From the IMG/VR virus record IMGVR_UViG_3300021962_000021, positions 124,001 to 188,000 of that record: DNA of 64,000 nt. One strand, written 5' to 3'. Positions within the stretch are counted from its first letter, which is position 1. Each line of letters starts with the position of its first letter. A program made the translations under genes and the position numbers. The notes below the pieces were generated by a model. It did not search any database and was not told where the DNA came from. It worked only from the letters and a program-made list of their open reading frames with translations. Below, one piece after another: positions 12,788 through 35,822 of this stretch.

Positions 12788-13885
12788 ATGCATAAATTTT
12801 TCACATCATCATACGATGCCAGTATCTACCTACAACAACCTGACCAAAACGCAGGTAGAGATGAGATATTAGAGGTTGGTAAACTTTACTATGGTTCTAT
12901 TAAAGATATAGCCAGAGCATTAATAAAGTTTGATACAGGTTCCATAAAAACAGAAATAGAAACGATAGGAACGGGTAGTTGGAAAACATACTTAGTTCTT
13001 CGTTCTGCTAATTCTTCTGAAATACCTTTGGAATATACGATTTATGCAAACGCAGTTTCGCAAAGTTGGACTATGGGAACTGGAACAAAATTTGATAATA
13101 TAACAACCGATGGTATTAGTTGGAAATATAGAGATGGTGATAGAAAGTGGCAAGAAAATACAATAGCCGGAACTGCGAATTATATAGGAAGTGGTGCAAC
13201 CGGTTCAGCAAATGCAGAAGGTGGAACTTGGTATACCGCATCGGAAGCATCGCAATCATATAACTATCAACCCGATGATGTTAGAATGGATGTTACAAAT
13301 ATTATTCATTTGTGGATAAGTGGTTCATTACCAAATAATGGATTTATTTTACATCATAGTTTAACTAACGAATATGGTAATAGTTTGGATTATGGTGTTC
13401 TTAAATTCTTTTCAAAAGAAACAAATACAATATACGAACCAAAATTGGAATTAGTATGGAACGACCAAATATTTTCAACGGGTAGTTTGTCTCCTGTGAC
13501 TGGTTCAACTTCAACCGATGCATTAGAAAATTCAAAAGTAGTTGTAACAAATCTGCAAAAAGAATATTTCCAAAATACAAAAACAAAAGTAAGAGTTAAA
13601 GGTAGAGATTTATATCCGGCCAAAACATTTGGTTCAACATTTGAATATGACCAATCAAAATATTTACCTACTTCATCTTATTATCAAATCGAAGATTATA
13701 AAACAAGTGAAATTATTGTTCCATTTGGTGAATATTCAAAATTGAGTTGTGATTCTAAATCTAATTACTTTTATTTAGATACGGCATCATATCCTATAAA
13801 CAGAAGTTATAGATTAAAATTAAAAGTTGTAGTAGATGGTGTTTCAAAAATAATTGATGACAAATTAATATTTGATGTTATATAA
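12788..13885 (+). CDS. Virion structural protein (beta-sandwich, DNRLRE-like)
   Basis: DASIY...RALIKFD...FFSKETNTIYEPKLELVW pattern; inside the baseplate operon. Confidence 0.55.
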   Translation: MHKFFTSSYDASIYLQQPDQNAGRDEILEVGKLYYGSIKDIARALIKFDTGSIKTEIETIGTGSWKTYLVLRSANSSEIPLEYTIYANAVSQSWTMGTGTKFDNITTDGISWKYRDGDRKWQENTIAGTANYIGSGATGSANAEGGTWYTASEASQSYNYQPDDVRMDVTNIIHLWISGSLPNNGFILHHSLTNEYGNSLDYGVLKFFSKETNTIYEPKLELVWNDQIFSTGSLSPVTGSTSTDALENSKVVVTNLQKEYFQNTKTKVRVKGRDLYPAKTFGSTFEYDQSKYLPTSSYYQIEDYKTSEIIVPFGEYSKLSCDSKSNYFYLDTASYPINRSYRLKLKVVVDGVSKIIDDKLIFDVI

Positions 13886-16406: not shown

Positions 16407-19400
16407 ATGGCAAGATATTATGACCCAAACGAATTAGGAGGAAACCAAATTGGTACACCATACGATGGTATTGGTGATTATAACCCGTTTGCCGGTCAAA
16501 ATTTGAGTGATTTAAATCAATTTGGCGGCGGCGGTGGTGGAACATATATCCCACCGGTTGAACCAAATCCAACATTCGTTCCACCCTCATATGTAGACCA
16601 AAATTCGGGTTCATTAAAAATAAATCTTACATCGGATGAACCAACTGAATTTTTGGAAAACGATATATTAGTTGGTCTGGGTTCATCGCAAACTGTAACA
16701 TACAATCCATCATTTACATTCACAGGCCCAAAGATATATAAAGCAAATATTGCAAACAAAATATCTAAAAATTATTATGAGATAAGTATTAAACGTGCTT
16801 TTCCTGGAATAAGAGATTTTAATAATCAAGATCAAAATATTATACCATTTGATGATATATCAAATACACCAAGAACATTGGTTGCAAATAACTTTGGATT
16901 TGATTCAAATATACCACAAATTGGAAGATTAAACTTCACAAACATACCACCGGATGATATATTAGGAGGAACACCAACAGCAAATGACTTATCATATAGA
17001 GAAGTTATAAAAATACAAGAATATATTTTAGATGAAACATCTAATCAATATACTTTAGGAAATTTATCCACACTACCAAGTCTAAATGGTGTTGTAAATT
17101 TAAACTTTTCTTTTAAACCAAAAACAACCGGCGGTGGTGGAACTGGAGATGGTGGTGGAGGAAACGGCGGTGGTGGAACTGGAGATGGTGGTGGAGATAA
17201 AACTATTGAATACAATGTAGAATTTATATCAAATTACACATCAGAATTAGGCGAATTTATAAAATTAAAATATGAAATAGTTTCTGCTGCAAATGATATT
17301 GTAGATTTTGGTGATTTAAAATTATCGGTTGGAAATATAGATACAAAAAGTGTAAAAGAATCTTTATTAACAAATGGAGAAGTAAATCTTAATATATTTG
17401 AATCATATGAAACTGCTAGATTAGTTTTAAATAATAATAATCTACCTGAAGGGTTTTCTTATTTAAAATTTTATTGGGCGCCAAAAGCAGTTGCTGCTGG
17501 TAATACCGATTATACGAAATGGAATGAAGTAAATAAATTCTTCAAAGTTACAGGAAAAGAATTTGCAAGTGGAATTGTAGTTGCTGCGTTATTTTCAAAA
17601 CAAGAAAGGGAGCAAATATTAAAACCAATAATTAATTTAGGTGATTTTACAAAAGAATATCAAGTAAAAGATTCCGATTCGGATAGAACAATACAAATTC
17701 CATTCTCATATACAAATATGGAATATGTAGATGTTTATATAACAGATACACCAATCAGAGTTCCGGCAATAAATCGTTTTGTAGAACTATCTTTTGCAAA
17801 AGATTTTTCAGGAGTTTATGGAAATAAAAAGATATATTTTGTACCAGTAAATAGATTTGGAATAGGTAATACGGTAGAAGAAGTTATTAGATTTACCGCT
17901 ATCAATGATTTTCCATCTATAACACAAATAACATTGGCAGAATCAATAGATGTACCTGTATTTTCTGATTTAAATGTTGAATTTGATGTTTCGTATAATA
18001 CCTTTGCGGCAACTTCCGTAGATATATTTGTTTTAAATAACGAAAAAAATAAAATTCCGTTATTATCATCTCAACCACCAAATGGAACTTTTACCGTAAA
18101 TTTAAAAACTATAATTGAAAAGTTTTTAGGTGGTAAAAAAATAGATTTGACTTTTGTATTTTTACCGATAAACAGAGGTGGTGAAAAAGAATTAATTGGT
18201 AATGAATATGAAATTACAACTTCTGTATTCTATCCTGAATTAGTTTTAGATGAATCAACAATAAAGACGGCAATTTTTAATATTATTTCCGATAGTCTTA
18301 AATTCAACGATTTAGGATTAGAAAGTAAATATTTAACCCATTTGGTTAATTTTGGAAATAACGAACAAATTATAGTTTCTTCTTGGGAAGAAGATGATTG
18401 GACATTATCGGAAAAAGTAGAAGATGAAATAGGTAATCTGGTTGTTAAAAATAAAGTAGATTCAATTCTTTTAAAATTATATTCACCACTACCTGCAAAC
18501 ATTGGAACAAATTCAACTCTTTGGATTACAAAATTAATGAGTAATCCGTTGATTGAAACGGTTGTATTGAATGAACAGGATGTTGTGAAATGTCCACCAA
18601 TAAAAGGACCTAATTTTAGTATAGAAGTAGATTTTGTTAGTGGAAAATCAACAGCATTTGAATCATTAGATAATTTAATACTAAGTGCATCGACATCATC
18701 ATCTGCCAATCTTATATCAACATATTTAAGTTCATCATTAATCAATACCGATGAATTAAATATAGAATATTATAGTGGTTCAAATTATTTAACAGGTTCA
18801 TTAGTTTGGGATAATTTTGTTCATTTTAGTTCTGCAAAAGAAAGAGTTGATAATTTTGTTTATAAAATTCAATTAATAGAAGCATACGAAACTTATATAG
18901 ACAATAGTTACAATGTAGGAAACTCAACAGCAGAACTTCAAGAAAGAGAAAGACAACTTTTAAAGAAAAATCAACTAATAAATAATTTTGATGGTTTTGA
19001 AAAATTCTTATATACATCATCATCGTTATATACAAATAGTGGAAGTAATTCTATAACATGGCCTTATGAAAATGGGGTTAGATTATTGAGTAACACCACA
19101 CAGGTTGCAACATGGTATGAAAATACGATAGAATTGGCAGATAATTATGATTCTGAAAACCAAAATTATTTAAAAAATAATATACCTGAATACATTTTGA
19201 ACAATACTGAGAATGATAATTTTTTATTATTCTTCTCAATGATTGGACATCACTTTGATAACATTTATTATTTTACCAAAGCTTTAGAAAAAAATAGAGG
19301 ACTTGGTTATAAATTAAAAGGTGGTATGCCTGATAAGTTGTTATTTGATACTTTGAAATCATTTGGTTGGGATGCTAAAAATCTTGCTGTTGATGAAAAT

Positions 19401-21767
19401 TTATGGAAGTATGTTTACGGACAAGATTCGAATGGTAATGTAAAAGAATCCAATCCTGCAAAAGCTAGAACAAATGAAATATGGAGAAGAATTATAAACA
19501 ACTTACCATATCTTTTAAAACACAAAGGAACAAGAAGAGGTATATATGCTATTATGGCATGTTATGGTGTTCCATCATCAAATCTTTCAATTTTAGAATT
19601 TGGTGGACCGGAAGCACCTAATAGATTTTCAGAAACGGAAGAAGTTGGAACTACAAAATTATTAATGGATAATACAACATATGCATTATCTATGATAAGT
19701 GGTTCAAAATTAGAAGTAGAATGGAAAACCACAAACACAGGTGAAAAACCGAAAACAATAGAAATGTTTTTAAAACCTGCGTATGCACAAAACACAACGA
19801 TAATATCTGGTTCTGCAGGTTGGAATGTGGAAATATCTGGATCAGTTGGTAGTGAATATGGTGTAGTAAAATATAATAGTGGTAGCACAAATTTAATTAC
19901 ATCGGATTCTATTCCAATTTTCAATGGTAGATTTTTTGGATTATGTATTTCATCAGGTTCATCAGGAATTAAAATGAATCTTAAACAAGTAGAAAAAGAT
20001 AGAAATATATTTGAAAATGCATATAGTTCTTCCTTATCTAATAATTTTGGTCCACAAACAAATAAAGTTTATTTTGGGTGGAATTATAGTGGTAGTGTGG
20101 ATGAAATAAGATTGTGGACAACACAATTATCAGCATCTGCTTTCCATAAACACGTTTATTTTCCTGAAGCCGTAAATGGTAACCACATTTCTTCTTCTAC
20201 TGAAGATTTGTATTTCCGTTTAGATTTTGAGTATCCAAAAAATCTAGCATTAACATCTTCTTTGATGAATGTTGATACCAATGTTTATTTTAGTGGAAGT
20301 TTGACAAGAAATGATTACGAAAATAGACCAATATTATCCGCATCTTTATATTCGGAAAATCCTTCACCATTGTTATATGCAACTGCAAGTAACTTTAGTT
20401 CTTCTACAATATATCCATATAATTTTGAAGTAGTAGAAAGAACAATTGCATTGGAAATTCCAAACATTGGTTCTAGTAGATACTCAACTAATAAAGTTCG
20501 TTTTGAAAACCAAACAGATGTATTTGGTAATGATGCATCACTTGGAATTAATCTTTCATCAAAAAGTAGAACAACTAAAAAAGCATTTGACCAATCACCT
20601 GTTGATAGTAATAGAATTGGATTATTCTTCTCTCCAACAAAAGAGATGAATATTGATATTGCAAAATCATTTGGTGGGGTTAATTTAGATAACTATATTG
20701 GTGACCCATCGGATGAATATCGTTCTAACTACAAATCATTAGAAAAATTAAGAAAATATTATTTTAATAGATTTGATGGTAGAGATATTTACCAATATGT
20801 TAATTTAATAAAATCATACGAAAAATCTTTATTTGAGGATATTAAAAAGATGTTGCCTGCAAGAGTTAGAGCAACAACTGGTTTATTGATTGAACCGCAC
20901 ATTTTAGAAAGAAGCAAGATTGAACAAAAGAAACCAACAGGAGCTGAATATCAAAATGAATCTTTAATATCTTATAAAGATGAGTTAGTAACATCGGCGG
21001 AAAACAATCAATTTGAAACTATTATTGAAAGTAATTTATCAAAAGATTTATTTGGTGAAAATAATCAATATGATGCAACAATCTATACGGCATCTTTAAA
21101 TAATACTTCTGCAGAAAATTATCAATATGATACTCCGATATATGTAAATGATGAGTTAAATACCAGTGGAGATTATTATCAAAAAGAAGTTATAATTGAA
21201 ACGGAATTAGATAAAGGTGGAATATTAACAGAAATAGATGTTTATGATATAAATACCATCGCAGGTCAATCTGAATTAGAAACAATTGGATTTGGTATTT
21301 ATGCACAAAGTGGTTCTGCTATTAGAACTTATTTTGATAAAGATGGTAGACGAGTTAAAGAAAGAATTAGAGTTAATTTAGTAACCGAACAAAAACAAAG
21401 AGATATTGTTAAATATAAAGTTGTAATAGGTGGAAAGGGAGACCCTAGAGGTGGGATGGAATTAACATCATCTTTATACACCGAAACCAAACTTAATATT
21501 CAACCATTTAGTGGTTCAGTTCAGCCTGTTGCAACGGGCAATATCATATCGGTAAAACCTGTTAGTGGTTATTTAGGAACACATTATAGAAATACATCCG
21601 ATTTGACAAGAGGATTACAAAATTCATTCTATAAGGGCAGTAAAAACACAGCTGCAACAACATTGGATGGAACTCCGCCTGTTGAAACATTTACAACTAA
21701 TCCTAACACATTGAGAGTAAACAAAGCGGGTAGAGATGCAAGTGAACCAATTTTGGAAATAGAATAA
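16407..21767 (+). CDS. Large baseplate/tail structural protein (1786 aa) with LamG-like segment
   Basis: IINNLPYLLKHKGTRRGI wedge-like motif, YSGSVDEIRLW LamG-like strand, GLLIEPHILERSK; position in the tail module. Confidence 0.65.
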   Translation: MARYYDPNELGGNQIGTPYDGIGDYNPFAGQNLSDLNQFGGGGGGTYIPPVEPNPTFVPPSYVDQNSGSLKINLTSDEPTEFLENDILVGLGSSQTVTYNPSFTFTGPKIYKANIANKISKNYYEISIKRAFPGIRDFNNQDQNIIPFDDISNTPRTLVANNFGFDSNIPQIGRLNFTNIPPDDILGGTPTANDLSYREVIKIQEYILDETSNQYTLGNLSTLPSLNGVVNLNFSFKPKTTGGGGTGDGGGGNGGGGTGDGGGDKTIEYNVEFISNYTSELGEFIKLKYEIVSAANDIVDFGDLKLSVGNIDTKSVKESLLTNGEVNLNIFESYETARLVLNNNNLPEGFSYLKFYWAPKAVAAGNTDYTKWNEVNKFFKVTGKEFASGIVVAALFSKQEREQILKPIINLGDFTKEYQVKDSDSDRTIQIPFSYTNMEYVDVYITDTPIRVPAINRFVELSFAKDFSGVYGNKKIYFVPVNRFGIGNTVEEVIRFTAINDFPSITQITLAESIDVPVFSDLNVEFDVSYNTFAATSVDIFVLNNEKNKIPLLSSQPPNGTFTVNLKTIIEKFLGGKKIDLTFVFLPINRGGEKELIGNEYEITTSVFYPELVLDESTIKTAIFNIISDSLKFNDLGLESKYLTHLVNFGNNEQIIVSSWEEDDWTLSEKVEDEIGNLVVKNKVDSILLKLYSPLPANIGTNSTLWITKLMSNPLIETVVLNEQDVVKCPPIKGPNFSIEVDFVSGKSTAFESLDNLILSASTSSSANLISTYLSSSLINTDELNIEYYSGSNYLTGSLVWDNFVHFSSAKERVDNFVYKIQLIEAYETYIDNSYNVGNSTAELQERERQLLKKNQLINNFDGFEKFLYTSSSLYTNSGSNSITWPYENGVRLLSNTTQVATWYENTIELADNYDSENQNYLKNNIPEYILNNTENDNFLLFFSMIGHHFDNIYYFTKALEKNRGLGYKLKGGMPDKLLFDTLKSFGWDAKNLAVDENLWKYVYGQDSNGNVKESNPAKARTNEIWRRIINNLPYLLKHKGTRRGIYAIMACYGVPSSNLSILEFGGPEAPNRFSETEEVGTTKLLMDNTTYALSMISGSKLEVEWKTTNTGEKPKTIEMFLKPAYAQNTTIISGSAGWNVEISGSVGSEYGVVKYNSGSTNLITSDSIPIFNGRFFGLCISSGSSGIKMNLKQVEKDRNIFENAYSSSLSNNFGPQTNKVYFGWNYSGSVDEIRLWTTQLSASAFHKHVYFPEAVNGNHISSSTEDLYFRLDFEYPKNLALTSSLMNVDTNVYFSGSLTRNDYENRPILSASLYSENPSPLLYATASNFSSSTIYPYNFEVVERTIALEIPNIGSSRYSTNKVRFENQTDVFGNDASLGINLSSKSRTTKKAFDQSPVDSNRIGLFFSPTKEMNIDIAKSFGGVNLDNYIGDPSDEYRSNYKSLEKLRKYYFNRFDGRDIYQYVNLIKSYEKSLFEDIKKMLPARVRATTGLLIEPHILERSKIEQKKPTGAEYQNESLISYKDELVTSAENNQFETIIESNLSKDLFGENNQYDATIYTASLNNTSAENYQYDTPIYVNDELNTSGDYYQKEVIIETELDKGGILTEIDVYDINTIAGQSELETIGFGIYAQSGSAIRTYFDKDGRRVKERIRVNLVTEQKQRDIVKYKVVIGGKGDPRGGMELTSSLYTETKLNIQPFSGSVQPVATGNIISVKPVSGYLGTHYRNTSDLTRGLQNSFYKGSKNTAATTLDGTPPVETFTTNPNTLRVNKAGRDASEPILEIE
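17129..17196 (+). repeat. 32-bp direct repeat (36-bp period) encoding a Gly-rich linker GGGGTGDGGG x2
   Basis: CGGCGGTGGTGGAACTGGAGATGGTGGTGGAG at 17129-17160 and 17165-17196. Confidence 0.9.
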
Positions 21768-21786
21768 ACGGATTTTAAAAATAATT

Positions 21787-21795
21787 ATATTTATA
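21787..21795 (+). promoter_or_regulatory. Putative late promoter ATATTTATA
   Basis: Intergenic, before the ATG at 21818. Confidence 0.55.
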
Positions 21796-21817
21796 AACAA
21801 AAGAATAATACAATACT

Positions 21818-22441
21818 ATGGGATATTTAAGTAATACCGAATTGACAGTTGATGCTATCCTTACTAAAAAAGGTAGAGAAAAATTAGCAGCTGGGCAAGG
21901 TTTAAACATTACACAATTTGCATTGGCAGATGATGAAATAGATTACTCACTTTATGAACCAGCACATCCATTGGGTTCTGCTTATTATGATGCGGCAATT
22001 AAAAATATGCCTGTATTGGAAGCAAATCCTGATGAAACTCAAGTAATGAAATATAAGTTAGTAACTTTACCAAAAAATACTACAAGAATCCCAGTTGTAG
22101 AATTTGGTGTTCCTAATATTTCAGTAAATCAAAGAAGTGGTGAAGTATCACTTTCTCCAACCACATCTCCAGCTGGTAATAGAAGTTTGGGATATACATT
22201 AGTATTAGCAAACAAAAATGCAGGTGATATTGTAGGTGAAGGTGTTTCCGCAGCAGTTGGTTCAGTACCAGTATTTATTGGTGATGATGTATCTGCAACA
22301 GCAGCAATCGCTAAAGGTTTAACTTTCAAATTTATTCCAAACCCATCATTAACTTCGAATATCAGAACAACTATAACTGTTTATGGTAACGAAACGGGTG
22401 GTTCACAAACTATTCCAGTAACAGTAACATACGTTCAATAA
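21818..22441 (+). CDS. Tail/baseplate structural protein (tail-collar-fibre-like N-terminus)
   Basis: LTKKGREKLAAGQGLNITQFALADDEIDY resembles the N-terminus of tail-collar/fibre attachment proteins. Confidence 0.5.
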   Translation: MGYLSNTELTVDAILTKKGREKLAAGQGLNITQFALADDEIDYSLYEPAHPLGSAYYDAAIKNMPVLEANPDETQVMKYKLVTLPKNTTRIPVVEFGVPNISVNQRSGEVSLSPTTSPAGNRSLGYTLVLANKNAGDIVGEGVSAAVGSVPVFIGDDVSATAAIAKGLTFKFIPNPSLTSNIRTTITVYGNETGGSQTIPVTVTYVQ

Positions 22442-22449
22442 TATAAACT

Positions 22450-23691
22450 ATGGCAGTAATAAGAGATAATAGAGGAGCCCTTTTAGCAAGTAATTTATCA
22501 CAATACTTAGCAGGTGCAGCTAACACCGCAGGAACTCCAATTGATTCAAACGAAGTCGTTAGAATCCTTAACCAATTTTTAGGAAGTGGTGAACAAATTA
22601 GCGGTGATATCACTACGATTAGTAATGGTATTTACAAAAAATTTGGTGCAATTGATAAAGTAACCAATAGAACGGAAATCGTAACTTCTGGAATATGGAG
22701 TGGTGATACTGGTTCTTTAGATGTTAAAGCAAACTTTACTTCATCTGCACAAGTTGTCGGTGTATCTGGTAAATATTATTTAGATGTTTATAATTCATTA
22801 ACATCTTCCGATGCAGCTGAAGTTCAATTTTCAATTGGATATGGTGATGTAAACGGATATGGTGCACCAACATTAACGCAAGATGATTCATCAACATTAC
22901 CTACTAAGGCTGTTTATAATCAATTTAAAAACGTATTGTTAGAAAGAACGGATGATTATTTTAGTGTTTACACAGGCTCAACTGCAGGTGGACACAACTT
23001 ACAAAATTTCTACGCAATTAATGTAAATAGAGCAAGATATAAAGAAAGACTTGATCCAGGTAATTTTTCTTTAGTTTTATCTGGTTCTATTAGAAGTATC
23101 ACTTTAATTGATGATAGTGGTGGAACCGATGAAAATGTAACAACTGCAGGAAGAGTTTACAACTTAGTTAGTGGTTCATTAAACATTGGTTCAGCATTAA
23201 CCGCATCAATCAATACATATACCGCATCAAACGGACAAGGTTGGGGATTATTCTATCCAGATATGGGTGTAATATTACTTAACCCATCAGCATTAGCTAC
23301 ATCTGTTGACCCATTCTTAGCACCTGCAAGTTCTTCAATCACATCTATTTATCACCAAAATAATGGTAATAAATCAGGATCGGTTGCATTACTTATGGCT
23401 ATAAGTGGTGGTGCAGATTTCCAAGCAAGAAGAACTGAAAATGTTTCTACATCTCACTACTTCGTAAGAGCAAACAATAGAGAATTTAATTTCTCAAATA
23501 ATCCAACATTCGTAACGGGTTCTATTGGTGAATTTTCGGTATCTAGTTTCGAAAGAGACCCTAAAGTTTACATAACTACGGTTGGACTTTATGATGATAC
23601 AAATGAATTATTGGCAGTTGCAAAAGTATCTAAACCAATTGAAAAATCATTTGATAAAGAAGTTGCAATTAAAGTTAAATTAGATTTCTAA
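22450..23691 (+). CDS. Virion structural protein, paralogous C-terminus with 23767 gene
   Basis: EFNFSNNPTF ... YITTVGLYDDTNELLAVAKVSKPI; Ser/Thr/Gly-rich. Confidence 0.6.
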   Translation: MAVIRDNRGALLASNLSQYLAGAANTAGTPIDSNEVVRILNQFLGSGEQISGDITTISNGIYKKFGAIDKVTNRTEIVTSGIWSGDTGSLDVKANFTSSAQVVGVSGKYYLDVYNSLTSSDAAEVQFSIGYGDVNGYGAPTLTQDDSSTLPTKAVYNQFKNVLLERTDDYFSVYTGSTAGGHNLQNFYAINVNRARYKERLDPGNFSLVLSGSIRSITLIDDSGGTDENVTTAGRVYNLVSGSLNIGSALTASINTYTASNGQGWGLFYPDMGVILLNPSALATSVDPFLAPASSSITSIYHQNNGNKSGSVALLMAISGGADFQARRTENVSTSHYFVRANNREFNFSNNPTFVTGSIGEFSVSSFERDPKVYITTVGLYDDTNELLAVAKVSKPIEKSFDKEVAIKVKLDF

Positions 23692-23716
23692 TCGGAGAAT
23701 AAATTAAAACCCTACT

Positions 23717-23766: not shown

Positions 23767-24921
23767 ATGTTAAAAAGAATACCAAAATCAGATATTAGTA
23801 TTAGACCATTCAAAGCTTATAAAGAATGGTCATTTGATAATACATCTGCAGATATTACATTATTAGAAGCTGATGCGGAATCGCAAGCATCATCATCATA
23901 TTTTCCAAAGAAATCTATTTTTGGACAATTAAAGGCACAGTTTTATAATGAGCATATTGATAATCCGTTTTTAAGATTTGGTGCAAAGAGTGTAGATTAT
24001 ACAACCGGATTGGGTTCGGAAAGATATATAAGTAGTTCTGCTAAAATATTATCAATTCCACAAATATATGTGGGTGAAGGAATTAAAAAAGGTTCTGTAA
24101 CTTTGATAGATAACGGTGTATCGTATATAGATGATGGTAACGGAAATTTAATTGGAGCTGCAGGTGACACTGTAAATTTTTCTATATTTAATAATGAAAC
24201 AGGAGATGCAACATTTACTGATTTTTTAAGTAATGTTTACAATATAGTAGTTACAACTATAAATTTTACAACTGGAGTAATTACAGGAACACATTTGGGA
24301 GACCCATTTTCCGCAAATATGGTATCTTTCGATATTCAAACCGGAGATATGTTGGTTGATAATTTTGATTTCTTAGAAGGTGCGGCCGGGTCGGATAAAG
24401 CTGGTAATATTTTTTACAATCAAGGATTAATTGTTTTAACGAGAACAATCAACGATAGATTAAATAGTAATTGGGATTTATCTTTTAAATCGACAAAAAC
24501 AATTTATGAACACGAATATCTGTTGATTGTAAATCCAGATGAATTTAATATATCACAAAACCCATCGGCTGTATCTGAGGTTGGGTTTGAATACCAATAC
24601 ATAACAGGTTCGGATAATAGAATATACAAAGTAAATACAAAAACAGGAGCTAGATACATTAGAAAACGATTGGAATTAGAAAACGGCGATGTATTGGACT
24701 ATAGATTTACATCATCTTATAACGGAACTACTAAAGGTGGATTTGATGATTGGGATTTAAATAGTTCGGTTGATTCAACGGGTTCATTCCTTGCACCATT
24801 TATAACAACAATCGGCTTATACGATGATGATATGGATTTAGTAGCAGTGGCAAAATTACCACAACCAATTAAATCAGAGCCAGATTTTCCTGTGAACTTT
24901 ATTATCCGATTTGATATTTAA
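23767..24921 (+). CDS. Virion structural protein, paralogous C-terminus with 22450 gene
   Basis: EFNISQNPSA ... FITTIGLYDDDMDLVAVAKLPQPI. Confidence 0.6.
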   Translation: MLKRIPKSDISIRPFKAYKEWSFDNTSADITLLEADAESQASSSYFPKKSIFGQLKAQFYNEHIDNPFLRFGAKSVDYTTGLGSERYISSSAKILSIPQIYVGEGIKKGSVTLIDNGVSYIDDGNGNLIGAAGDTVNFSIFNNETGDATFTDFLSNVYNIVVTTINFTTGVITGTHLGDPFSANMVSFDIQTGDMLVDNFDFLEGAAGSDKAGNIFYNQGLIVLTRTINDRLNSNWDLSFKSTKTIYEHEYLLIVNPDEFNISQNPSAVSEVGFEYQYITGSDNRIYKVNTKTGARYIRKRLELENGDVLDYRFTSSYNGTTKGGFDDWDLNSSVDSTGSFLAPFITTIGLYDDDMDLVAVAKLPQPIKSEPDFPVNFIIRFDI

Positions 24922-24924
24922 TTT

Positions 24925-24933: not shown

Positions 24934-24948
24934 GTAAAACAAAAAGAT

Positions 24949-25158: not shown

Positions 25159-25164
25159 TTTTCA

Positions 25165-25584: not shown

Positions 25585-25587
25585 AAA

Positions 25588-25619
25588 TTTGGTATTTTCA
25601 AATATTTGTTGTATATTTG
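25588..25619 (+). promoter_or_regulatory. Bacteroidota-type sigma70 promoter TTTG-N20-TATATTTG
   Basis: TTTG 25588-25591, 20-nt spacer, TATATTTG 25612-25619; matches the -33/-7 consensus TTTG-N19-21-TAnnTTTG. Confidence 0.65.
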
Positions 25620-29500: not shown

Positions 29501-29711
29501 TGGATTACCTCGTCCAAACTTCTTAGTAATTGATGAGGGATTTGGAACATTGGATAGTGATAACCTTTCTTCTTTATTCGGAATGATGCAATATCTTAAA
29601 ACTCAATTTGATTTTATTTGGGTAATTTCTCACTTAGATGCTATGAGAGATATTGTAGATGGATTGATTGAGATTAAAAAGGAGAATGGATTTAGTAAGA
29701 TTGATTTTTAA
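26562..29711 (+). CDS. Fused SbcD(Mre11/gp47)-SbcC(Rad50/gp46) nuclease-ATPase
   Basis: ADVH, GDIAH, GNHD, GDIH metallophosphoesterase motifs; APNASGKS Walker A, CKFC hook, CSGME signature, VIDEGFGTLD Walker B/D-loop, ISH switch, all in one ORF. Confidence 0.92.
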   Translation: MSKLKTIYHIADVHIRNVKRHKEYRQVFEKMFEEIRNRGTEDAIIYLAGDIAHAKLEMSPELVREISWLFTECAKLAPTILITGNHDCNMNNLDRIDVLTPIVEALNLDNFYYLRDTQVWKHGDTAFAVYSIFDNKNNWPKAEDIDAKTKIALFHGPVDNSITDVGYVVSSRHFTTDIFDGYDLALLGDIHKRQEMISPKGCKVVYAGSLVQQNFGETLDKHGFLIWDIDTLTYEAIDIPNEYGYYTLDVDNGIVPIVNNMPKHARLRVRLSNTDTADTKKVLTEIKMRYGLEDFTIIRTDSLSKLKTGNRQNKLDFEDITDVNHQNSLIHDYVKRMMPFVTDEDLFELETINRDVNSRIVLDDVARNIQWKPIRFEFSNMFSYGEDNVIDFSKLNGLMGLFAPNASGKSSLFDSISFCLYDKSSRAFKAANIMNNRKTDFKCKLEFDINGERYFIERSAKTINKGKNVKVDVEFYKMEGDERTSLNGTERRDTNAIIEQYVGTYEDFVLTALSLQGNNALFIDKSQSERKDLLAQFMGLNIFDKLYDTALEDIREVSVLIKNFKKTDFTTELANKGIEIKDRKGELKELQQQLNSETKIKEGIEGEVLNLTRQLAPIDSNLDLPTLEEKRKSIGKQIENLETEYTNTETKIETHNDTLTEISKSIEEKKTFNGSIDIETAYSNYQREKTNLVEATKVYDTAKLHLSLAEEKISHLDKHEYDPNCKFCCNNEFVKDAMKAKEGLPQFKDVVKQAMIDCVGIQQTLDTMEGVEEQYNQLQELKTRYSKLKVILEKAEMEYKGLETKEELLQTQLDKVEEDIEKYYENEDTIETNKELEKQIKEKETLKSEVDKVIRQINKDINDTNSAITQLQSFIDNIKAKMDEVKDLEEKNRLYTYYLDAVKRDGVPYELISKALPVIQTEVNNILGQVVDFGVVMEVDGKNINAKIVYEDQEWALEMCSGMEKFISGLAIRVALINICGLPRPNFLVIDEGFGTLDSDNLSSLFGMMQYLKTQFDFIWVISHLDAMRDIVDGLIEIKKENGFSKIDF

Positions 29712-30740: not shown

Positions 30741-33700
30741 ATGGCGGTTCTAAAGAAAACATTATTTCCTGAAAATTTAGAAAAGTATTCCGTTCTCATT
30801 CAAGATACGGATACCAATAGTAAGTATTTTAAAATTACAGAGTTACCCGATACCTTTACAGGAGGTAAAAATGCATTCTTAATTCAAGGTTCTGAATTTT
30901 TAGTTGCTGATACTATTGTAAAAATAGAAATCAAAGATTCTCAAGGTAATATAATTTATCACGAACCAGGTGAGGGTATACCCGAATATTATGAGGGAAC
31001 TTCAAAAGTTATAGCGGTTTACATTTATCCAGATACGGCATTTGGTCCATGTACAATTACAATATTGGGTGAAGTTTCGGAATATGTTGATGCAAATGGT
31101 ATAAAGCAACCCGTTCCGTTACAATATAGAGATACTTACAATGTAAGATGGCAGAAAGAAATAAATGTAAATCCATTTTTACAAAATAATACAAAAATTC
31201 GTTTTTACAAAAGACCGCAGGTAGAGATAACCGAAATTTTAAAACCTGTATTTACTATCACCGAAACAAGAATAGCACAAGGTGGTAATACATCTTTATA
31301 TCCAACGGATTATTATGTAAATAATACTTTTGGTAAATTTGGTGACCAATATATTTTACCAGATGATTTGGAATATTTTGCTACATTACTAAATGGACAA
31401 ACTTTTCAAAATAATATGTTGGGCGAAACTATGAGTTTTTCATCCTATCCAACTTATACTCCAGAAATATTAGAAATTATATCAGCTGATACTGCTAAAA
31501 TTAATCCTCCCTTAATAGAATCCGATATTGTTCAGACGGTTATGACAACACCATATTCTGTTACATATTTATCCGGTTCAGATAGAACGCAATCCGAATT
31601 TACATCATCATATGCAAATATAAAATTATCTCAATTGGAAACATTTGCGGGTGATGTAAAAAGAGTAAAAGTATTTAGACGTTCTAAAGGTAGTATTTCT
31701 GATTATGAATTGGTGCAAGATATTTTATTAGAATCGACAGAGTTATTGATTACATTGGAAGGTAGTAGTAGAGCAGTTCAATCTACTGGTATTTTTGATT
31801 CTGAAATTTTATCAAAATATTGGAATACTACGGAAACTTTAACATCCACTTTATCAAATTCAAGATTAGTAAATGGAGTTAAATTAAATGGTGGTGGTAA
31901 GTTTTTATATACATCATCTTTAGATTTAACATCCAAAACCGTTTATGAATTACAATTTGATGCGTTTTATAGTTCATCAACTGCATCGGATTTAGATATA
32001 TACATAAGTGGTTCAACTACAACAAATAGTTCATCTATTGGTGAATTAAAAATAGGAACTTTAACCGGTATATCACCGACTAAAAAATTTGAAAATCAAA
32101 TAGTTCAATTTAAATTGGATGTAACGGAACCATCGGCATCACTATATTTTAGCGCATCACAAGGTGAATGGCATCTATCAGATTTAAGTTTAGTTGTATC
32201 AGCAGAAACAGCATTTTCACCCGACTCTGTTGCATTTTTGACATCTGTTCCAACGACCGTTCCAAATGAAATATTTGAATTTAAATTTGAATTTTATGAT
32301 GTAAATAATAATTTCGTTCCAATAACGATATTAAAAGAAAAACAATTTTCAGGTGGAACAAATACAGTTATTGTTTTAACTCAATTGGCTTCATCATCGG
32401 TTGAGTTAAGTTCTTCGATTGCATCGGCATCTTTAGATTTAACAAACACAATATCTTCCGTTTCACAATCTATTAGTGGAACAGTCACAGTAAATAGTGC
32501 ATCTGCGTATACAACAATTACAAATGTAAGTAGTTCGGTTAGTGGTTCGATATTTAGTTTGAGTGGAAGTGTTAGTGGAACAATAGGCAGTGTGAGTGCA
32601 TCTGTAAGTGGGACTATCGGACAAGTTAGTAGTTCGGTAAGTGGAACAATAGGTAGTGTGAGTGCATCAGTGAGTGGGACTATTGGTCAAGTAAGTGGTT
32701 CAATTAGTGGTTCAATATATACATTAAGTGGAAGTGTTAGTGGTTCGATAGCAAATGTTAGTTCATCTATAAGTTCATCATTATCTACGGCAAATTCGCA
32801 ATCATTATATACCGTTTATTCGGCATCTGCATATTTGGATAAATTTATTTTTACGGATGAAAATGGTAAGGTAAAAAGACCACCAACCGCATCTGTATCT
32901 GGTCTTTATACGGGAGATACTCATTTAGGATTTTATGGTGGTGGTGTTTGGAAAACTTATATGGATAATCAGGGTGATTTTTATTTAACATCATCTGCGG
33001 TTAATGGTGGGTTTTTAGCATGGAGTTCGACACAAGGTAGATTACAAATCGCCGGAGATATAAATATTCAAGGTGGTAATGCCGCAACAACTACTGCTTT
33101 ATCATCTTCATTAAATGCAGTAAGTGGTGCCATAAATTCCGCAACCGCTTCTTTATCTACATCCGTTGCATCTACAACATTTACAACAGCAACTGGTTTA
33201 ATTGCAAAACCACCAACCGTATTAGTTGGTTCTACTGCCGGTCTTTATTTGGGAAGTTCTTATTTAGGATATTATAATGGAAGTGATTGGAAAACCTATA
33301 TGGCCAATAATGGTAACTTCTATTTAAGTGGAACAGGAACCGATTCATTAACTTGGAATGGTAGCACTTTAACAATCAATGGTGCAATAACTGTTACGGG
33401 TGGTAATGCTGCAACATCGGCAGCTTTAACATCTTCGTTATCATCCACATTAAGTTCTGCAAATTCGACTGCAGCTGGGTATGCTGCAAATGCGGTGACA
33501 TCTGGTTCAGTATCTGCGGCAGCTGCACAAACGGCTGCACAATTATTTGCAACAAGTATAGGAACTAACGCTGTAGCATCAGGTTCAGCTGCAGCATCTG
33601 CTGCACAGACTGCGGCAATAAATCAGGCCAAAACGGATGCATCCGCCTCTATTAATTTATTAGCTAATGGTAACTGGACAGGTGGTAGTGGAACATTTAT

Positions 33701-35822
33701 AACTGCTACATCTATTTCATCGCCTGTAATCGCAGGTAATGGTGGATATATTTCAGGTTTATTTGTAGTTGGAAGTGGTGGAGCAATAACATTGGATGGT
33801 GTAAATAAAAAAATGTATATTGGAACGGGAACATATAATAATACCAATACATCTTTTTATGTAGATAATTCGGGTCAATTTTCTTTAAAAGATAAATTAA
33901 CTTGGGATGGAACAACATTGACAGTAAATGGTGCCGTTAATATTACAGGAGGTAGTGCTGCCAGTGCAATAACAAATTTAAATAGTGCAACATCTTCATT
34001 AGCAAGTTCGGTATCAACTGCACAATCAACTGCAAATACAGCGGTATCAAATGCTTCAACGGCACAATCTACCGCAAATACTGCAAATACAAAAGCAGAT
34101 ACTGCACAATCACAATTAACAGCAATAGGTTCGCAATCTGGTTCTTGGGTAAATCCATCAAACTACAATTTCGGTGGAAGTGGATTTGCATTGGCAAACG
34201 CAGCACCTGCGGGCTCTGGATTATATTTGGGTGCAAATTATTTGGGGTATTATAATGGTAGTTCTTGGAAATCTTATATGGATAATTCGGGTAACTTTGG
34301 TTTACAAGGTAGTGCGGGTTATTTAACATGGACCGCCGCATCCGATGCATTGGCTATAAAAGGAGATATTACTGCAACGAATATAACAGCAACAAACACA
34401 GGAAATATTGCAGGGTGGACACTAAGTTCCGATTCTTTATCAAAATCAACGGGTAGTTTTAGTTTAAGATTAACAACTTCAGGAAACAAACCAGCTATTG
34501 TTATTAGAGAAACAAATAGTGTGGATTATTTGGATAGATTGAGAATTAATGCCGATTTAACCATTCCTGCAATTAATATTAGTGATACGGGATCGTTGGG
34601 GTATTCTAATAGTTCACAAATACTTGCAACCGTATATGGGTCGGATAATCCGCCATATCAAGATGGTAATACGGGATACGATATGGCTGCATATGGGCAT
34701 ATCAACTATGGATATGGGTATGGTATAATTGGTTTACAATACGCATCTGAAGAGATATTTGTGGAAGCGGACCAGTTTCCAAGCATATCAAATATTATTT
34801 CAGGCCAATGTGATTATCAGGAATCTATTACAGGATATTGGGATTGTTATTTAAGAGTTAGACAATTCCCATCGGCAGTAGATGCACAAAATGAAACAAA
34901 TGTAAATACTTCTTTTGGATTTGGTGGAGAACAATTAATATTGTTAGCTTCAGCGCAATATTATGAATATAGTGGTCAAGTATATACCGATGTTCAAAAT
35001 AAATACGGTGGAACAATTAAAGCACCAGGAGGTGGGGGTATTAACACGGTGGGGACAGCCGTTTGGTATAGAGTTGAAATCATACAATATTATTATGGAT
35101 ATGTGGATGGAACCGCAAATAGTTTTATAAGAATTAGAAGGCCGGCAGGAGATATTATTGTAAAATTTGGTAGAGTTGGTAATGGTTATTCGATATTCTC
35201 TCCGGGCGGTATACAGGTTTATCAGGGTTTTAAAAACTATATGAATGCGGCTGATGTTTCTGCAAAAGCAGCGGGTCTTGATTCGGAGGCAGCTGCGAAC
35301 ATAAACTTTTTTGAAGTAAAAGGAAAATCGGGTATAATTGGTTCATTATCAATATCGGAAGGTTTAACTGGAAAATATAAAAACTTTAAAATACAACATC
35401 CAATACATGAAAACAAATGGTTATATCATACAGCAATAGAAGGACCTAGAGCAGATTTGATGTATAGAGGGACCGTTGAATTGTTAAACGGAGAAGCAAT
35501 GTGTTCAATAGATTCTGCCTCAAAAATGACGGAAGGAACTTTTTATAATCTATCAAGAAATGCACAATTATTTTTACAAAACGAATCAGGATTTGATAGA
35601 ATTAAAGGAAATATTATTAGTGGTTCTATAAATATACAATGTGAAAATACTCAATCAACCGATGTGGTTAGTTGGTTAGTTGTTGCCGAAAGAAATGATC
35701 CAGATATAATAGATTCACCACTATATGATAGAAATAAAAATTATAGAACGGAAAAATATAAAAACGATTTTTTATTACAGGCTAAAAATGAATTAATACA
35801 AAGAATAAGTGGTAGTATATGA
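30741..35822 (+). CDS. Long tail fibre / receptor-binding protein (1693 aa)
   Basis: Globular N-terminus, Ser/Ala coiled-coil stalks, repeated beta modules, C-terminal KNFKIQHP...LYHTAIEGPRADLMYRG chaperone-like segment typical of fibre ends. Confidence 0.75.
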   Translation: MAVLKKTLFPENLEKYSVLIQDTDTNSKYFKITELPDTFTGGKNAFLIQGSEFLVADTIVKIEIKDSQGNIIYHEPGEGIPEYYEGTSKVIAVYIYPDTAFGPCTITILGEVSEYVDANGIKQPVPLQYRDTYNVRWQKEINVNPFLQNNTKIRFYKRPQVEITEILKPVFTITETRIAQGGNTSLYPTDYYVNNTFGKFGDQYILPDDLEYFATLLNGQTFQNNMLGETMSFSSYPTYTPEILEIISADTAKINPPLIESDIVQTVMTTPYSVTYLSGSDRTQSEFTSSYANIKLSQLETFAGDVKRVKVFRRSKGSISDYELVQDILLESTELLITLEGSSRAVQSTGIFDSEILSKYWNTTETLTSTLSNSRLVNGVKLNGGGKFLYTSSLDLTSKTVYELQFDAFYSSSTASDLDIYISGSTTTNSSSIGELKIGTLTGISPTKKFENQIVQFKLDVTEPSASLYFSASQGEWHLSDLSLVVSAETAFSPDSVAFLTSVPTTVPNEIFEFKFEFYDVNNNFVPITILKEKQFSGGTNTVIVLTQLASSSVELSSSIASASLDLTNTISSVSQSISGTVTVNSASAYTTITNVSSSVSGSIFSLSGSVSGTIGSVSASVSGTIGQVSSSVSGTIGSVSASVSGTIGQVSGSISGSIYTLSGSVSGSIANVSSSISSSLSTANSQSLYTVYSASAYLDKFIFTDENGKVKRPPTASVSGLYTGDTHLGFYGGGVWKTYMDNQGDFYLTSSAVNGGFLAWSSTQGRLQIAGDINIQGGNAATTTALSSSLNAVSGAINSATASLSTSVASTTFTTATGLIAKPPTVLVGSTAGLYLGSSYLGYYNGSDWKTYMANNGNFYLSGTGTDSLTWNGSTLTINGAITVTGGNAATSAALTSSLSSTLSSANSTAAGYAANAVTSGSVSAAAAQTAAQLFATSIGTNAVASGSAAASAAQTAAINQAKTDASASINLLANGNWTGGSGTFITATSISSPVIAGNGGYISGLFVVGSGGAITLDGVNKKMYIGTGTYNNTNTSFYVDNSGQFSLKDKLTWDGTTLTVNGAVNITGGSAASAITNLNSATSSLASSVSTAQSTANTAVSNASTAQSTANTANTKADTAQSQLTAIGSQSGSWVNPSNYNFGGSGFALANAAPAGSGLYLGANYLGYYNGSSWKSYMDNSGNFGLQGSAGYLTWTAASDALAIKGDITATNITATNTGNIAGWTLSSDSLSKSTGSFSLRLTTSGNKPAIVIRETNSVDYLDRLRINADLTIPAINISDTGSLGYSNSSQILATVYGSDNPPYQDGNTGYDMAAYGHINYGYGYGIIGLQYASEEIFVEADQFPSISNIISGQCDYQESITGYWDCYLRVRQFPSAVDAQNETNVNTSFGFGGEQLILLASAQYYEYSGQVYTDVQNKYGGTIKAPGGGGINTVGTAVWYRVEIIQYYYGYVDGTANSFIRIRRPAGDIIVKFGRVGNGYSIFSPGGIQVYQGFKNYMNAADVSAKAAGLDSEAAANINFFEVKGKSGIIGSLSISEGLTGKYKNFKIQHPIHENKWLYHTAIEGPRADLMYRGTVELLNGEAMCSIDSASKMTEGTFYNLSRNAQLFLQNESGFDRIKGNIISGSINIQCENTQSTDVVSWLVVAERNDPDIIDSPLYDRNKNYRTEKYKNDFLLQAKNELIQRISGSI
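32529..32792 (+). repeat. Eight 33-bp (11-aa) Ser-rich repeats, e.g. SSSVSGTIGSV / SASVSGTIGQV
   Basis: Hendecad periodicity visible in protein and DNA, including a near-identical 66-bp duplication. Confidence 0.85.
32901..34335 (+). repeat. Three ~40-aa modules GLYxGxxxLG(F/Y)YxGxxWK(T/S)YMxNxG(D/N)F
   Basis: Copies begin at 32901, 33240 and 34218, separated by Ala/Ser/Thr stalks. Confidence 0.85.

Follow-up and report, generated by a model that had tools for sequence, protein, structure and literature searches.

Among the described systems closest to the locus examined here, the virions of mycobacteriophages are O-glycosylated, with phage-encoded glycosyltransferases proposed to decorate structural proteins in the cytoplasm, glycans located at the C-termini of capsid and tail-tube subunits, and a glycosyltransferase repertoire that varies between relatives (Freeman et al. 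2023, Cell Host Microbe; as summarised in PMC12619734). Giant viruses, including chloroviruses and mimiviruses, likewise glycosylate capsids and fibrils with their own cytoplasmic glycosyltransferases (PMC9614988). In bacteria, general O-glycosylation of Bacteroidota recognises the sequon D-[S/T]-[A/I/L/V/M/T], while glycosylation of serine-rich-repeat adhesins by GtfA/GtfB and heptosylation of AIDA-I/TibA-type autotransporters involve dense cytoplasmic O-glycosylation of serines in structured or repetitive surface fibres. Finally, in proteoglycan linker synthesis, xylosylated Ser-Gly sites are extended by beta4GalT7, an enzyme of family GT7. Against this background, we examined a short serine motif in a large aquatic phage with a 238-kb genome, focusing on a window of 64,000 nucleotides (positions 124,001 to 188,000 of IMG/VR record IMGVR_UViG_3300021962_000021), in which a preliminary description had noted an abundance of [S/T]-[G/A/S]-S tripeptides in peripheral virion proteins and proposed a candidate O-glycosylation sequon. 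The features of the window relevant to this analysis are as follows:

10756..12786 (+), gp6-like baseplate wedge protein, serving as an internal control without the motif.
12788..13885 (+), 365-aa peripheral baseplate protein directly downstream of the gp6 wedge, with a predicted carbohydrate-binding-module-like beta-sandwich plus an Ig/MG-like domain.
16407..21767 (+), 1786-aa virion protein, the motif-rich part of which is the C-terminal 1036 residues (nt about 18660-21767).
21818..22441 (+), 207-aa conserved protein in the same operon, in which the motif is strongly depleted.
22450..23691 (+), 413-aa virion protein of a very large uncharacterised family.
23767..24921 (+), 384-aa virion protein sharing only its last 39 residues with the 413-aa protein.
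30741..35822 (+), 1693-aa fibre-like protein.
32556..32717 (+), 33/66-bp tandem repeat inside the fibre gene.
35819..57863 (+), variable glycan island.
40638..45281 (+), three paralogous GT7 (beta-1,4-galactosyltransferase-like) catalytic domains, each fused to a concanavalin-A-like LamG_3 domain (40638-42086, 42392-43822, 43824-45281).

The hand counts given in the preliminary description were found to be exact, and the enrichment is stronger than had been stated. We counted 10 copies of [ST][GAS]S in the 365-aa protein, 11 in the 413-aa protein, 5 in the 384-aa protein, 28 in the 1786-aa protein (27 of them after residue 760), and 41 in the 1693-aa protein, compared with 1.8, 2.7, 1.3, 5.6 and 16.7, respectively, expected from whole-protein shuffles (p<0.0005 for all except the 384-aa protein, p=0.0095). 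Conversely, no copies were found in SbcC (26562-29711), the primase (25606-26565), gp6 (PHROG baseplate wedge, E 5e-27; 0 vs 1.5) or gp25 (10315-10752). Local shuffles in 10- to 40-residue windows preserved a 4-5x excess for the proteins at 12788, 16407 and 22450, with the 384-aa protein also retaining its excess (5 vs 1.3-1.4, p about 0.01). For the 30741 fibre, however, the excess dropped from 2.4x to 1.5x (41 vs 26-27, p about 0.003), and part of its count derives from the tandem repeat identified by Tandem Repeats Finder, which encodes 11-residue units V-S-[GAS]-S-V-S-G-T-I-G-[SQ] and contributes about 10-17 non-independent motif copies. For this one protein, the earlier statement that the motif does not reflect simple DNA duplication is therefore only partly true. 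The fibre sequence also shows three repeated modules of about 100 aa, and gave no tail-fibre PHROG hit. Codon usage at the motif is varied, with 100 distinct 9-mers among 250 sites, of which AGT-GGT-TCA is the commonest, and the window proteins are not paralogues by BLAST or by profile-profile comparison.

Closer inspection revealed that the motif is a directional sequence unit, about 3.3x over composition and 2x over first-order Markov expectation, and specific for Ser at position 3 (SGS 5.2x and TAS 4.9x, against SGT 0.8x and TAT 1.1x); reversed orders are not enriched. At the middle position G is enriched 5.0x, A 4.1x and S 2.2x, with charged residues, aromatics and Pro nearly excluded. The hydrophobic flanks previously noted are real, and the full unit is a pentapeptide, hydrophobic-[ST]-[GAS]-S-hydrophobic, which is about 12x enriched (83 observed, 6.9 expected); in the four non-paralogous window proteins [VILFYMW][ST][GAS]S[VILFYMW] occurs 18 times vs 1.3 expected, a 14x enrichment. 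Together, these findings support the earlier view that the motif is a selected unit at the protein level, and not a by-product of Ser/Gly content.

Across the genome only 14 proteins carry the enrichment, including the peripheral baseplate proteins, the tail and S74-type fibres, the sheath (31 vs 11.4), the major capsid protein (15 vs 6.6) and a gp13-like neck protein (14 vs 4.1), whereas the other ~284 proteins are at expectation. One of the 14, a 471-aa, 21%-Ser protein at genome position 55247, is purely compositional, losing its excess under local shuffles, and the three large fibres outside the window are paralogues. Within individual proteins the motif is also confined to one part: the variable N-terminal two-thirds of the sheath has 29 vs 9.6 sites and its conserved C-terminal part 0 vs 1.1, and the C part of the 1786-aa protein has 27 vs 4.3 and its N part 1 vs 1.5. 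Portal, terminase, tube, a tape-measure-like protein, the gp6 wedge and all enzymes are at or below expectation. As was previously suggested, the enrichment is thus confined to peripheral or exposed virion proteins.

The same pattern was recovered in Microcystis phage Mel-JY01, Flavobacterium phage immuto, and many uncultured relatives. Ratios for the module were 3.75 in the phage itself, 3.17 in Mel-JY01 and 2.66 in immuto, and exceeded 1.8 in 78 of 80 IMG/VR baseplate loci; lower values were obtained for LR756508 (1.55) and RM378 (1.46), and no enrichment was found in T4 (0.75-1.12) or cyanophage S-SSM5 (1.16). Among IMG/VR orthologues, observed and expected counts were 246 vs 58.3 for the 365-aa protein (36 orthologues), 902 vs 274 for the 1786-aa protein (45 orthologues), and 252 vs 57.3 for the 384-aa protein (39 orthologues), compared with 9 vs 16.5 for gp6 (12 orthologues); orthologues of the 1786-aa protein in Mel-JY01 and immuto are also enriched. 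The 413-aa protein has more than 6148 homologues and 1998 representative clusters, and 150 diverse representatives gave 1026 vs 318.6. In contrast, the 207-aa operon neighbour (0 vs 0.6 in its own sequence) avoids the motif, with 6 vs 53.5 in 72 orthologues (SGS 0/6.4, TGS 0/12.0, TAS 1/12.5, while SAT 21/12.5 and TAT 20/23.5).

Our favoured, though tentative, explanation is that the pentapeptide is a recognition site for a phage-encoded post-translational modification of outward-facing virion proteins, most probably O-glycosylation of one of its hydroxyl residues, although no modification has been shown. In this reading, modification would take place in the cytoplasm, where phage particles assemble, before or during assembly. 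The motif does not depend on fold, being enriched in unrelated families (hhalign probability 0.1%), including the 365-aa protein, for which an AlphaFold model (pLDDT 86) matched a chondroitin-sulfate CBM (8wab, E 1e-7) and an alginate CBM (7vbo, E 6e-6) in Foldseek searches, the 413-aa protein, for which the model (pLDDT 86) gave no PDB fold match, and fibres with an S74 chaperone domain. In these two models the sites lie mostly in loops or at the ends of strands and helices, in support of the preliminary description, but their local contexts are heterogeneous (hairpin turns, helix N-caps, a helix C-cap, loops and one strand interior), such that a single conformational role is unlikely. Their loop/edge location does not, however, differ from that of other Ser/Thr/Gly residues (p=0.29).

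The evolutionary pattern also fits a recognised site. Among 120 close homologues position 1 toggles between S and T, while position 3 Ser is more conserved (0.90) than other Ser (0.73). Outside the conserved motif columns the motif remains 1.9x over local shuffles in two families, indicating that sites are being gained, and sheath sites differ between phages while their number is kept at 8, 11 and 10. Nevertheless, several sites are invariant and the middle Gly is fixed in 120/120 close homologues, as expected for a conformational requirement. Hydrophobic residues on both sides mean that the tripeptide is anchored between buried residues, which is more typical of a structural connection than of classical O-glycosylation, which favours disordered Ser/Thr/Pro/Ala-rich stretches. 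Furthermore, the density of sites is very high (58 in a 1304-aa fibre), and the rest of the proteome shows no general avoidance of the motif, whereas avoidance would be expected if a promiscuous cytoplasmic enzyme recognised a bare tripeptide.

Candidate initiating enzymes were identified outside the window, at genome positions 18.5-28 kb, in a clade-wide GT4 + GT4 + GT2 + beta-phosphoglucomutase/sugar-1-phosphate nucleotidyltransferase module comprising GT4 g19419, GT4 g20800 and GT2 g23864, which tracks the enrichment better than does the glycan island. Both GT4s keep the EX7E motif. The second GT4 is present in all five strongly enriched complete genomes and absent from the two weakly enriched ones, although this co-occurrence rests on 7 genomes and is confounded with phylogenetic distance. 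In immuto, LC-MS of digested DNA found only dA, dC, dT and formyl-preQ1 (PMC10516641), and the conserved glycosyltransferases therefore have no known DNA target there; they could instead act on lipids, polysaccharides or small molecules.

An only slightly less plausible alternative, itself tentative, is that the motif is a lineage-specific structural element with no modification, namely a compact, uncharged connector linking two buried hydrophobic anchor residues at strand ends, hairpin turns and helix caps, favoured for folding, stability or trimer packing in the variable, outward-facing beta-rich domains of this phage clade. In addition to the hydrophobic flanks and fixed middle Gly, 18 of 21 modelled sites lie at the edges of secondary-structure elements or in loops, five to ten motif columns are conserved across distant family members, and the motif forms part of the 11-residue tandem structural repeat in the fibre; Ser/Thr and Gly also tend to serve as capping and turn residues. 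Conversely, the pentapeptide is enriched in unrelated folds and heterogeneous local contexts, the enrichment of Ala as well as Gly in the middle argues for small size rather than a Gly-only backbone conformation, and Thr, the better beta-former, is excluded at position 3. S-[VIL]-S, which simple strand alternation predicts, is not enriched, homologous or analogous exposed proteins of T4 and S-SSM5 show no enrichment, and sites turn over while their number is maintained.

It appears unlikely that the motif is instead an unmodified functional surface feature, such as a repeated weak binding site (for example a main-chain NH ‘nest’ plus two hydroxyls binding anionic polysaccharide or phosphate groups), or one giving a non-sticky, uncharged surface to particles that persist for a long time in water. 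This would accord with its restriction to outward-facing virion proteins, the polysaccharide-binding-module fold predicted for the 365-aa protein, the exclusion of charged residues from the middle position, and an enrichment of Asn/Gln at +4 and -3. However, a general surface-chemistry benefit would act on composition and not on an ordered pentapeptide with buried flanks, no ligand is known, and avoidance in the 207-aa neighbour is not explained.

The more specific proposal of the preliminary description, that the motif is the acceptor sequon of the adjacent glycan island, a proteoglycan-like Ser-Gly site whose glycan is built by its GT7 enzymes, is not supported and appears very unlikely. The island lies directly after the fibre gene, and Pfam searches identified a methyltransferase, a GT2-like protein, the three GT7+LamG_3 fusions, two radical-SAM proteins, two NAD-dependent epimerases/dehydratases, a dTDP-sugar isomerase, a TPP enzyme, a HAD phosphatase and a GDSL-like protein. 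The GT7 domains are real (phmmer to beta4GalT1 E 2e-28 and beta4GalT7 E 1e-25), with 2714 metagenomic homologues, and homologous GT7-LamG genes lie near the baseplate module in three related IMG/VR records. However, Mel-JY01, immuto and a 100%-complete 274-kb IMG/VR genome (G002) have the same enrichment (module ratios 2.7-3.7) without any homologue of the GT7-LamG proteins, which were present in only 3-4 of 13 related IMG/VR records and in none of 50,697 phage records. Mel-JY01 and immuto also lack nearly all the other island genes, and apart from a weak HAD hit no island homologues were found in Mel-JY01, immuto or RM378. This is, at least in part, the outcome that the preliminary description had itself named as counting against its interpretation. 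The solved relatives, beta4GalT1 and beta4GalT7, moreover appear to transfer to sugar acceptors and not to protein. The island is not required for the motif enrichment and, in the favoured reading, would at most extend or diversify the glycan in some lineages. Lastly, an artefact of Ser/Gly/Thr-rich composition, low-complexity segments or recent DNA duplication, notwithstanding the 21%-Ser protein, the fibre repeat and the paralogous fibres, is refuted for the four non-repetitive window proteins (which keep their excess under 10-residue local shuffles), the sheath and the capsid protein, and the pattern is replicated in hundreds of diverged homologues.

Comparison with the systems introduced above revealed both parallels and departures. 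As in proteoglycan linker synthesis, Ser-Gly is part of the commonest form of the motif and the island enzymes possess GT7 catalytic domains, but acid-flanked Ser-Gly is not enriched (0.79x), no GT14 xylosyltransferase homologue is present, and the GT7 genes are absent from equally enriched relatives. As with serine-rich-repeat adhesins and AIDA-I/TibA-type autotransporters, targets are Ser-x-Ser-type sequences, and a GT4 enzyme has an adjacent GT4-like partner, followed by variable extension enzymes; however, there is no sequence match to GtfA/GtfB in the PDB or NCBIfam, and since both phage GT4s keep the EX7E motif there is no inactive partner. The Bacteroidota sequon similarly comprises three residues with a hydroxyl acceptor followed by an aliphatic residue, and Bacteroidota is the probable host phylum of part of this phage clade (immuto infects Flavobacterium). 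Here, though, Asp is not required, the Bacteroidota sequon is not enriched (1.04x), in agreement with the distinction drawn in the preliminary description, and the motif is equally enriched in a cyanophage, Mel-JY01; the Bacteroidota system is also expected to act in the periplasm, whereas virions assemble in the cytoplasm. In mycobacteriophages, too, the capsid and tail surface are the targets, but in place of C-terminal glycans we observe a dispersed pentapeptide in structured domains of many proteins, the tube is not enriched, and glycosylation, experimentally shown there, is here only inferred. With respect to giant viruses, which infect eukaryotes and the known linkages and sequons of which appear to be different, the best solved relative of the conserved GT4 g19419 is the putative glycosyltransferase B736L (PDB 3oy2, E 4e-9), which probably comes from a chlorovirus, although the similarity covers only the C-terminal GT-B domain. 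In the giant viruses the glycosylation machinery is virus-encoded and independent of the host, and glycan gene clusters are variable in both cases.

The 64-kb window corresponds to positions 124001-188000 of a 238,219-bp phage genome with about 30% G+C, in which almost all genes are on one strand. It encodes a gp6-like baseplate wedge, while the terminase, portal, major capsid protein and sheath lie outside it. The nearest isolates were identified as Microcystis phage Mel-JY01, Flavobacterium phage immuto, the 484-kb uncultured phage LR756508 and, distantly, Rhodothermus phage RM378. Given that RM378 is the reference genome of the 'Far-T4' group (PMC4360716), we infer that this phage belongs to that broad group. 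The 413-aa virion protein alone has more than 6148 metagenomic homologues, so the lineage is abundant. The following features of the window are relevant to the analysis of the [ST][GAS]S motif:

12788-13885, the 365-aa protein following the gp6 wedge
21818-22441, a conserved 207-aa protein of the baseplate operon
30741-35822, the 1693-aa fibre, holding three copies of a module of about 100 aa with the pattern GLY.G..YLGYYNGS.WK.YM.N.GNF.L.
32556-32717, a 33/66-bp tandem repeat within the fibre gene, encoding 11-residue V-S-x-S-V-S-G-T-I-G-x units

The preliminary description had reported, from hand counts, an abundance of this motif in peripheral virion proteins and its absence from SbcC, the primase, gp6 and gp25, and every one of these counts was found to be exact. 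Compared with whole-protein shuffles, we observed 10 vs 1.8 expected in the 365-aa protein, 11 vs 2.7 in the 413-aa protein, 5 vs 1.3 in the 384-aa protein, 28 vs 5.6 in the 1786-aa protein and 41 vs 16.7 in the 1693-aa fibre, against 0 in each of SbcC, the primase, gp6 and gp25. Shuffling within 10-, 20- and 40-residue windows left the 365-, 413- and 1786-aa proteins at 4-5x, whereas the fibre fell to 1.5x, part of its copies being supplied by the tandem repeat.

Closer examination revealed the motif to be an ordered unit. SGS was enriched 5.2x, TAS 4.9x, TGS 3.3x, SAS 2.5x and SSS 2.7x, while Thr-ending forms were close to or below expectation (SGT 0.8, TGT 0.9, SAT 0.9, TAT 1.1, TST 0.14) and permuted orders were depleted (SSG 0.44, GTS 0.45). 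The excess remained 2x even over a first-order Markov expectation. Among [ST]-x-S tripeptides the middle residue was G at 5.0x, A at 4.1x and S at 2.2x, with V/I/L at 1.0 and E, R, K, Y, P and W nearly absent. When hydrophobic flanks were included, the resulting pentapeptide was observed 83 times vs 6.9 expected in the enriched proteins and 11 vs 9.6 in the rest of the proteome, and 18 vs 1.3 in the four non-paralogous window proteins.

Genome-wide, 14 proteins were enriched at p<0.01, while the other ~284 together held 75 vs 86.9 expected. Besides the window proteins, the enriched set includes the major capsid protein and a 299-aa neighbour, a gp13-like neck protein, the sheath, and three large fibres. 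Outside the window, two loci of note contribute to this set:

Genome 204258-214864, three paralogous fibre proteins (677, 1304 and 1311 aa) between the neck and sheath genes, with DUF7310 coiled-coil regions and, in the two large ones, a C-terminal Peptidase_S74 intramolecular chaperone domain; they hold 26, 58 and 47 motif copies
Genome 55247-56662, a 471-aa protein with 21% serine, 31 motif copies and no Pfam match

The excess of the 471-aa protein disappeared under local shuffles, identifying it as a low-complexity Ser-rich protein. Summed over orthologues in this phage, Mel-JY01, immuto and RM378, we found 31 vs 11.4 in the sheath, 15 vs 6.6 in the capsid protein, 14 vs 4.1 in the neck protein, 23 vs 4.5 in the 365-aa family and 56 vs 15.7 in the 1786-aa family. 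Conversely, the portal (0 vs 1.9), terminase (0 vs 2.5), gp6 (2 vs 3.9) and a tape-measure-like protein (4 vs 11.6) showed no excess, and all enzymes were at expectation. The motif was also confined to particular parts of proteins. In the three sheaths all 29 sites lie in the N-terminal/variable two-thirds (expected 9.6) and none in the conserved C-terminal 243 residues (expected 1.1); the 1786-aa protein has 27 vs 4.3 in its C part and 1 vs 1.5 in its N part; and the capsid protein has all 6 sites in residues 111-270.

The same gene-by-gene split was recovered from 80 IMG/VR baseplate loci, 78 of which have a locus ratio above 1.8, while the Thr-ending control is about 1.0. By orthologue group, the motif was observed 246 times vs 58.3 expected in the 365-aa family, 902 vs 274 in the 1786-aa family, 614 vs 182 in the 413-aa family and 252 vs 57.3 in the 384-aa family, compared with 9 vs 16.5 in gp6, 6 vs 16.6 in the primase and 20 vs 33 in SbcC. 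A further 150 representatives of the 413-aa family (35-76% identity) gave 1026 vs 318.6. Mel-JY01 and immuto each possess 7-10 enriched proteins, with the rest of the proteome at expectation; in Mel-JY01 a motif-rich 508-aa protein (24 vs 7.5) lies next to a 1234-aa open frame containing a GT4 domain (record positions 3065-4591, and about 5293-5655). Ratios for the module around the 413-aa orthologue, or for the equivalent structural block, were 3.75 in this phage, 3.17 in Mel-JY01 and 2.66 in immuto, falling to 1.55 in LR756508 and 1.46 in RM378, and to 0.75-1.12 in T4 and 1.16 in cyanophage S-SSM5.

Alignment of the sites across homologues revealed both conservation and turnover. In the 413-aa family, five columns hold 43% of all motif instances and the remainder are scattered; after removal of the conserved columns, the motif is still 1.9x over local shuffles in both families tested. 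Among 120 close homologues, position 1 alternates between Ser and Thr, the middle Gly is fixed, and position 3 Ser is conserved at 0.90, against 0.73 for other serines. Sheath sites differ between phages while their number is kept. The 207-aa protein, which has homologues in Mel-JY01, immuto and RM378, shows the opposite pattern, with 6 observed vs 53.5 expected in 72 orthologues; SGS, TGS and SAS are absent while SAT and TAT are at normal frequency. No general avoidance was seen elsewhere in the proteome, with 20-kb bins scattering around 1.

AlphaFold models of the 413-aa and 365-aa proteins are confident (pLDDT 86 each). The former has no PDB fold match, while the latter is predicted to contain a carbohydrate-binding-module-like beta-sandwich, resembling chondroitin-sulfate- and alginate-binding modules (E 1e-7 and 6e-6), together with an Ig/MG-like domain, and may be a polysaccharide-recognising baseplate protein. 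Judged from secondary-structure position alone, 18 of 21 sites lie in loops or at the ends of strands and helices; the contexts of the 21 sites include hairpin turns, three helix N-caps, one helix C-cap and a strand interior. This distribution does not differ from that of other Ser/Thr/Gly residues (p=0.29).

The preliminary description had inferred that the motif is a modification site, and had suggested testing whether its enrichment co-occurs with the glycan island. The island itself is real, and comprises the following:

35819-57863, the island as a whole: a methyltransferase, a GT2-like protein, three GT7 domains fused to LamG_3 domains, two radical-SAM proteins, two NAD-dependent epimerases/dehydratases, a dTDP-sugar isomerase, a TPP enzyme, a HAD phosphatase and a GDSL-like protein
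40638-45281, three tandem paralogues fusing a GT7 galactosyltransferase-like domain to a concanavalin-A-like LamG_3 domain
45286-46701 and 49598-50803, the two radical-SAM proteins, one with a 4Fe-4S Fer4_12 domain, next to a TPP-dependent E1-like enzyme and the dTDP-sugar isomerase

The last of these suggests synthesis of an unusual, possibly branched or C-methylated, sugar. Pfam Glyco_transf_7N and 7C scored above their cut-offs for the GT7 enzymes, and phmmer searches matched beta4GalT1 (E 2e-28) and beta4GalT7 (E 1e-25) over residues 2-160. The fusion family has at least 2714 metagenomic members, but no hit in 50,697 isolate phage records. Apart from a weak HAD hit, none of the island genes has a homologue in Mel-JY01, immuto or RM378, and GT7-LamG is also missing from the 100%-complete 274-kb IMG/VR genome G002, whose baseplate locus is 3.65x enriched. 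The enrichment is therefore independent of the island, an outcome that the preliminary description had itself named as a ground for refutation, and which applies here to the link with the island.

A better enzyme candidate was identified outside the window, as a gene set conserved across the clade:

Genome 18512-28103, a PD-(D/E)XK nuclease, GT4 g19419, a second GT4, g20800, the 207-aa GT2 g23864, and a beta-phosphoglucomutase/sugar-1-phosphate nucleotidyltransferase fusion

Both GT4s belong to virus-only families, and the best solved relative of g19419 is the putative glycosyltransferase B736L (PDB 3oy2). The first GT4 is present in every relative examined, while the second is present in this phage, Mel-JY01, immuto, G002 and G004 (another of the complete genomes compared), and absent from the weakly enriched LR756508 and RM378; this co-occurrence, however, rests on seven genomes and is confounded with phylogenetic distance. 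In immuto, LC-MS of digested DNA found dA, dC, dT and formyl-preQ1 only (PMC10516641). DNA glycosylation, the usual alternative role for phage glycosyltransferases, therefore has no support in that relative.

Taken together, these findings confirm the initial observation and extend it to a clade-wide, fold-independent signature of outward-facing virion proteins. We tentatively consider a modification sequon, most likely for O-glycosylation started by the conserved core glycosyltransferases, to be the single most likely explanation, although the modification is only inferred and this reading falls short of being probable in absolute terms. It is favoured by fold independence, mixed structural contexts, the equivalence of Ala to Gly in the middle position, exclusion of Thr at position 3, site turnover, local avoidance in one operon neighbour and the orphan glycosyltransferases. 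A lineage-specific structural connector follows closely, and is favoured by the hydrophobic flanks, the fixed glycines and the very high site density. Simple beta-strand alternation was rejected, since S-[VIL]-S is not enriched and Thr is excluded at position 3, as was a universal property of phage fibres and baseplates, since T4 baseplate, fibre, sheath and capsid proteins (pentapeptide 0 vs 2.4) and the structural block of the T4-like cyanophage S-SSM5 are not enriched. A composition artefact was rejected by the whole-protein, local and Markov controls, and is accepted only for the 21%-Ser protein and partly for the 1693-aa fibre; a DNA-level motif or duplication was rejected given 100 distinct 9-mers among the sites, no relationship between the window proteins by BLAST or profile comparison, and only one tandem repeat, in the fibre.

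In its broadest form, the sequon reading would describe a phage-encoded, host-independent general O-glycosylation system with its own pentapeptide sequon (hydrophobic-[S/T]-[G/A/S]-S-hydrophobic), coating the whole outer surface of the virion, namely capsid, sheath, neck, neck fibres, baseplate periphery and tail fibres, throughout a globally abundant, mostly uncultured aquatic clade of T4-related ('Far-T4'-like) phages. A conserved GT4/GT4/GT2 core would start the glycan, and variable islands such as the GT7-LamG one would diversify it. This remains a possibility that we consider less likely than not. Our literature searches found no report of this motif or of virion glycosylation in this clade. 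Such a system would bear on receptor recognition, particle stability, grazing and decay in water, and evasion of host surface defences, and would give a function to glycosyltransferase genes that are routinely annotated as DNA-modifying or auxiliary metabolic genes. If the motif is structural instead, it is still a sharp sequence signature marking which proteins, and which parts of them, face outward in uncharacterised virions, which helps in annotating structural genes of unknown function.

We also compared the motif and its candidate enzymes with known glycosylation systems. As the preliminary description had held, the motif is distinct from the general O-glycosylation sequon of Bacteroidota: D[ST][AILVMT] was observed 46 times vs 44.1 expected in the enriched proteins (1.04x), and position -1 of the motif is Y/V/F/I/L, not D. 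The analogy that it drew with proteoglycan Ser-Gly acceptor sites was not supported, as acid-flanked Ser-Gly ([DE].{0,2}SG.{0,2}[DE]) was observed 5 times vs 6.3 expected (0.79x), Asn/Gln rather than Asp/Glu are enriched nearby, and PF02485, representing the initiating GT14 xylosyltransferase, has no match in the 238-kb genome at E<=0.01. With respect to serine-rich-repeat glycosylation by GtfA/GtfB, no GtfA/GtfB chain appeared among PDB matches to the GT4 pair at E<=1 and no TIGR02918/TIGR02919 hit was found, and both GT4s keep a conserved E-x7-E motif in this phage, Mel-JY01 and immuto, in contrast to a system of one active GT4 plus one catalytically degenerate partner. In common with virion glycosylation of the mycobacteriophage type (Freeman et al.), phage-encoded glycosyltransferases are present, comprising g19419, g20800 and g23864, conserved in the clade, to which the window adds a GT2-like protein and three GT7 enzymes. 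If the motif is a glycosylation sequon, it would be the first defined for virion glycosylation in tailed phages, and glycan coats would be a general property of an abundant aquatic phage lineage, not a peculiarity of mycobacteriophages.
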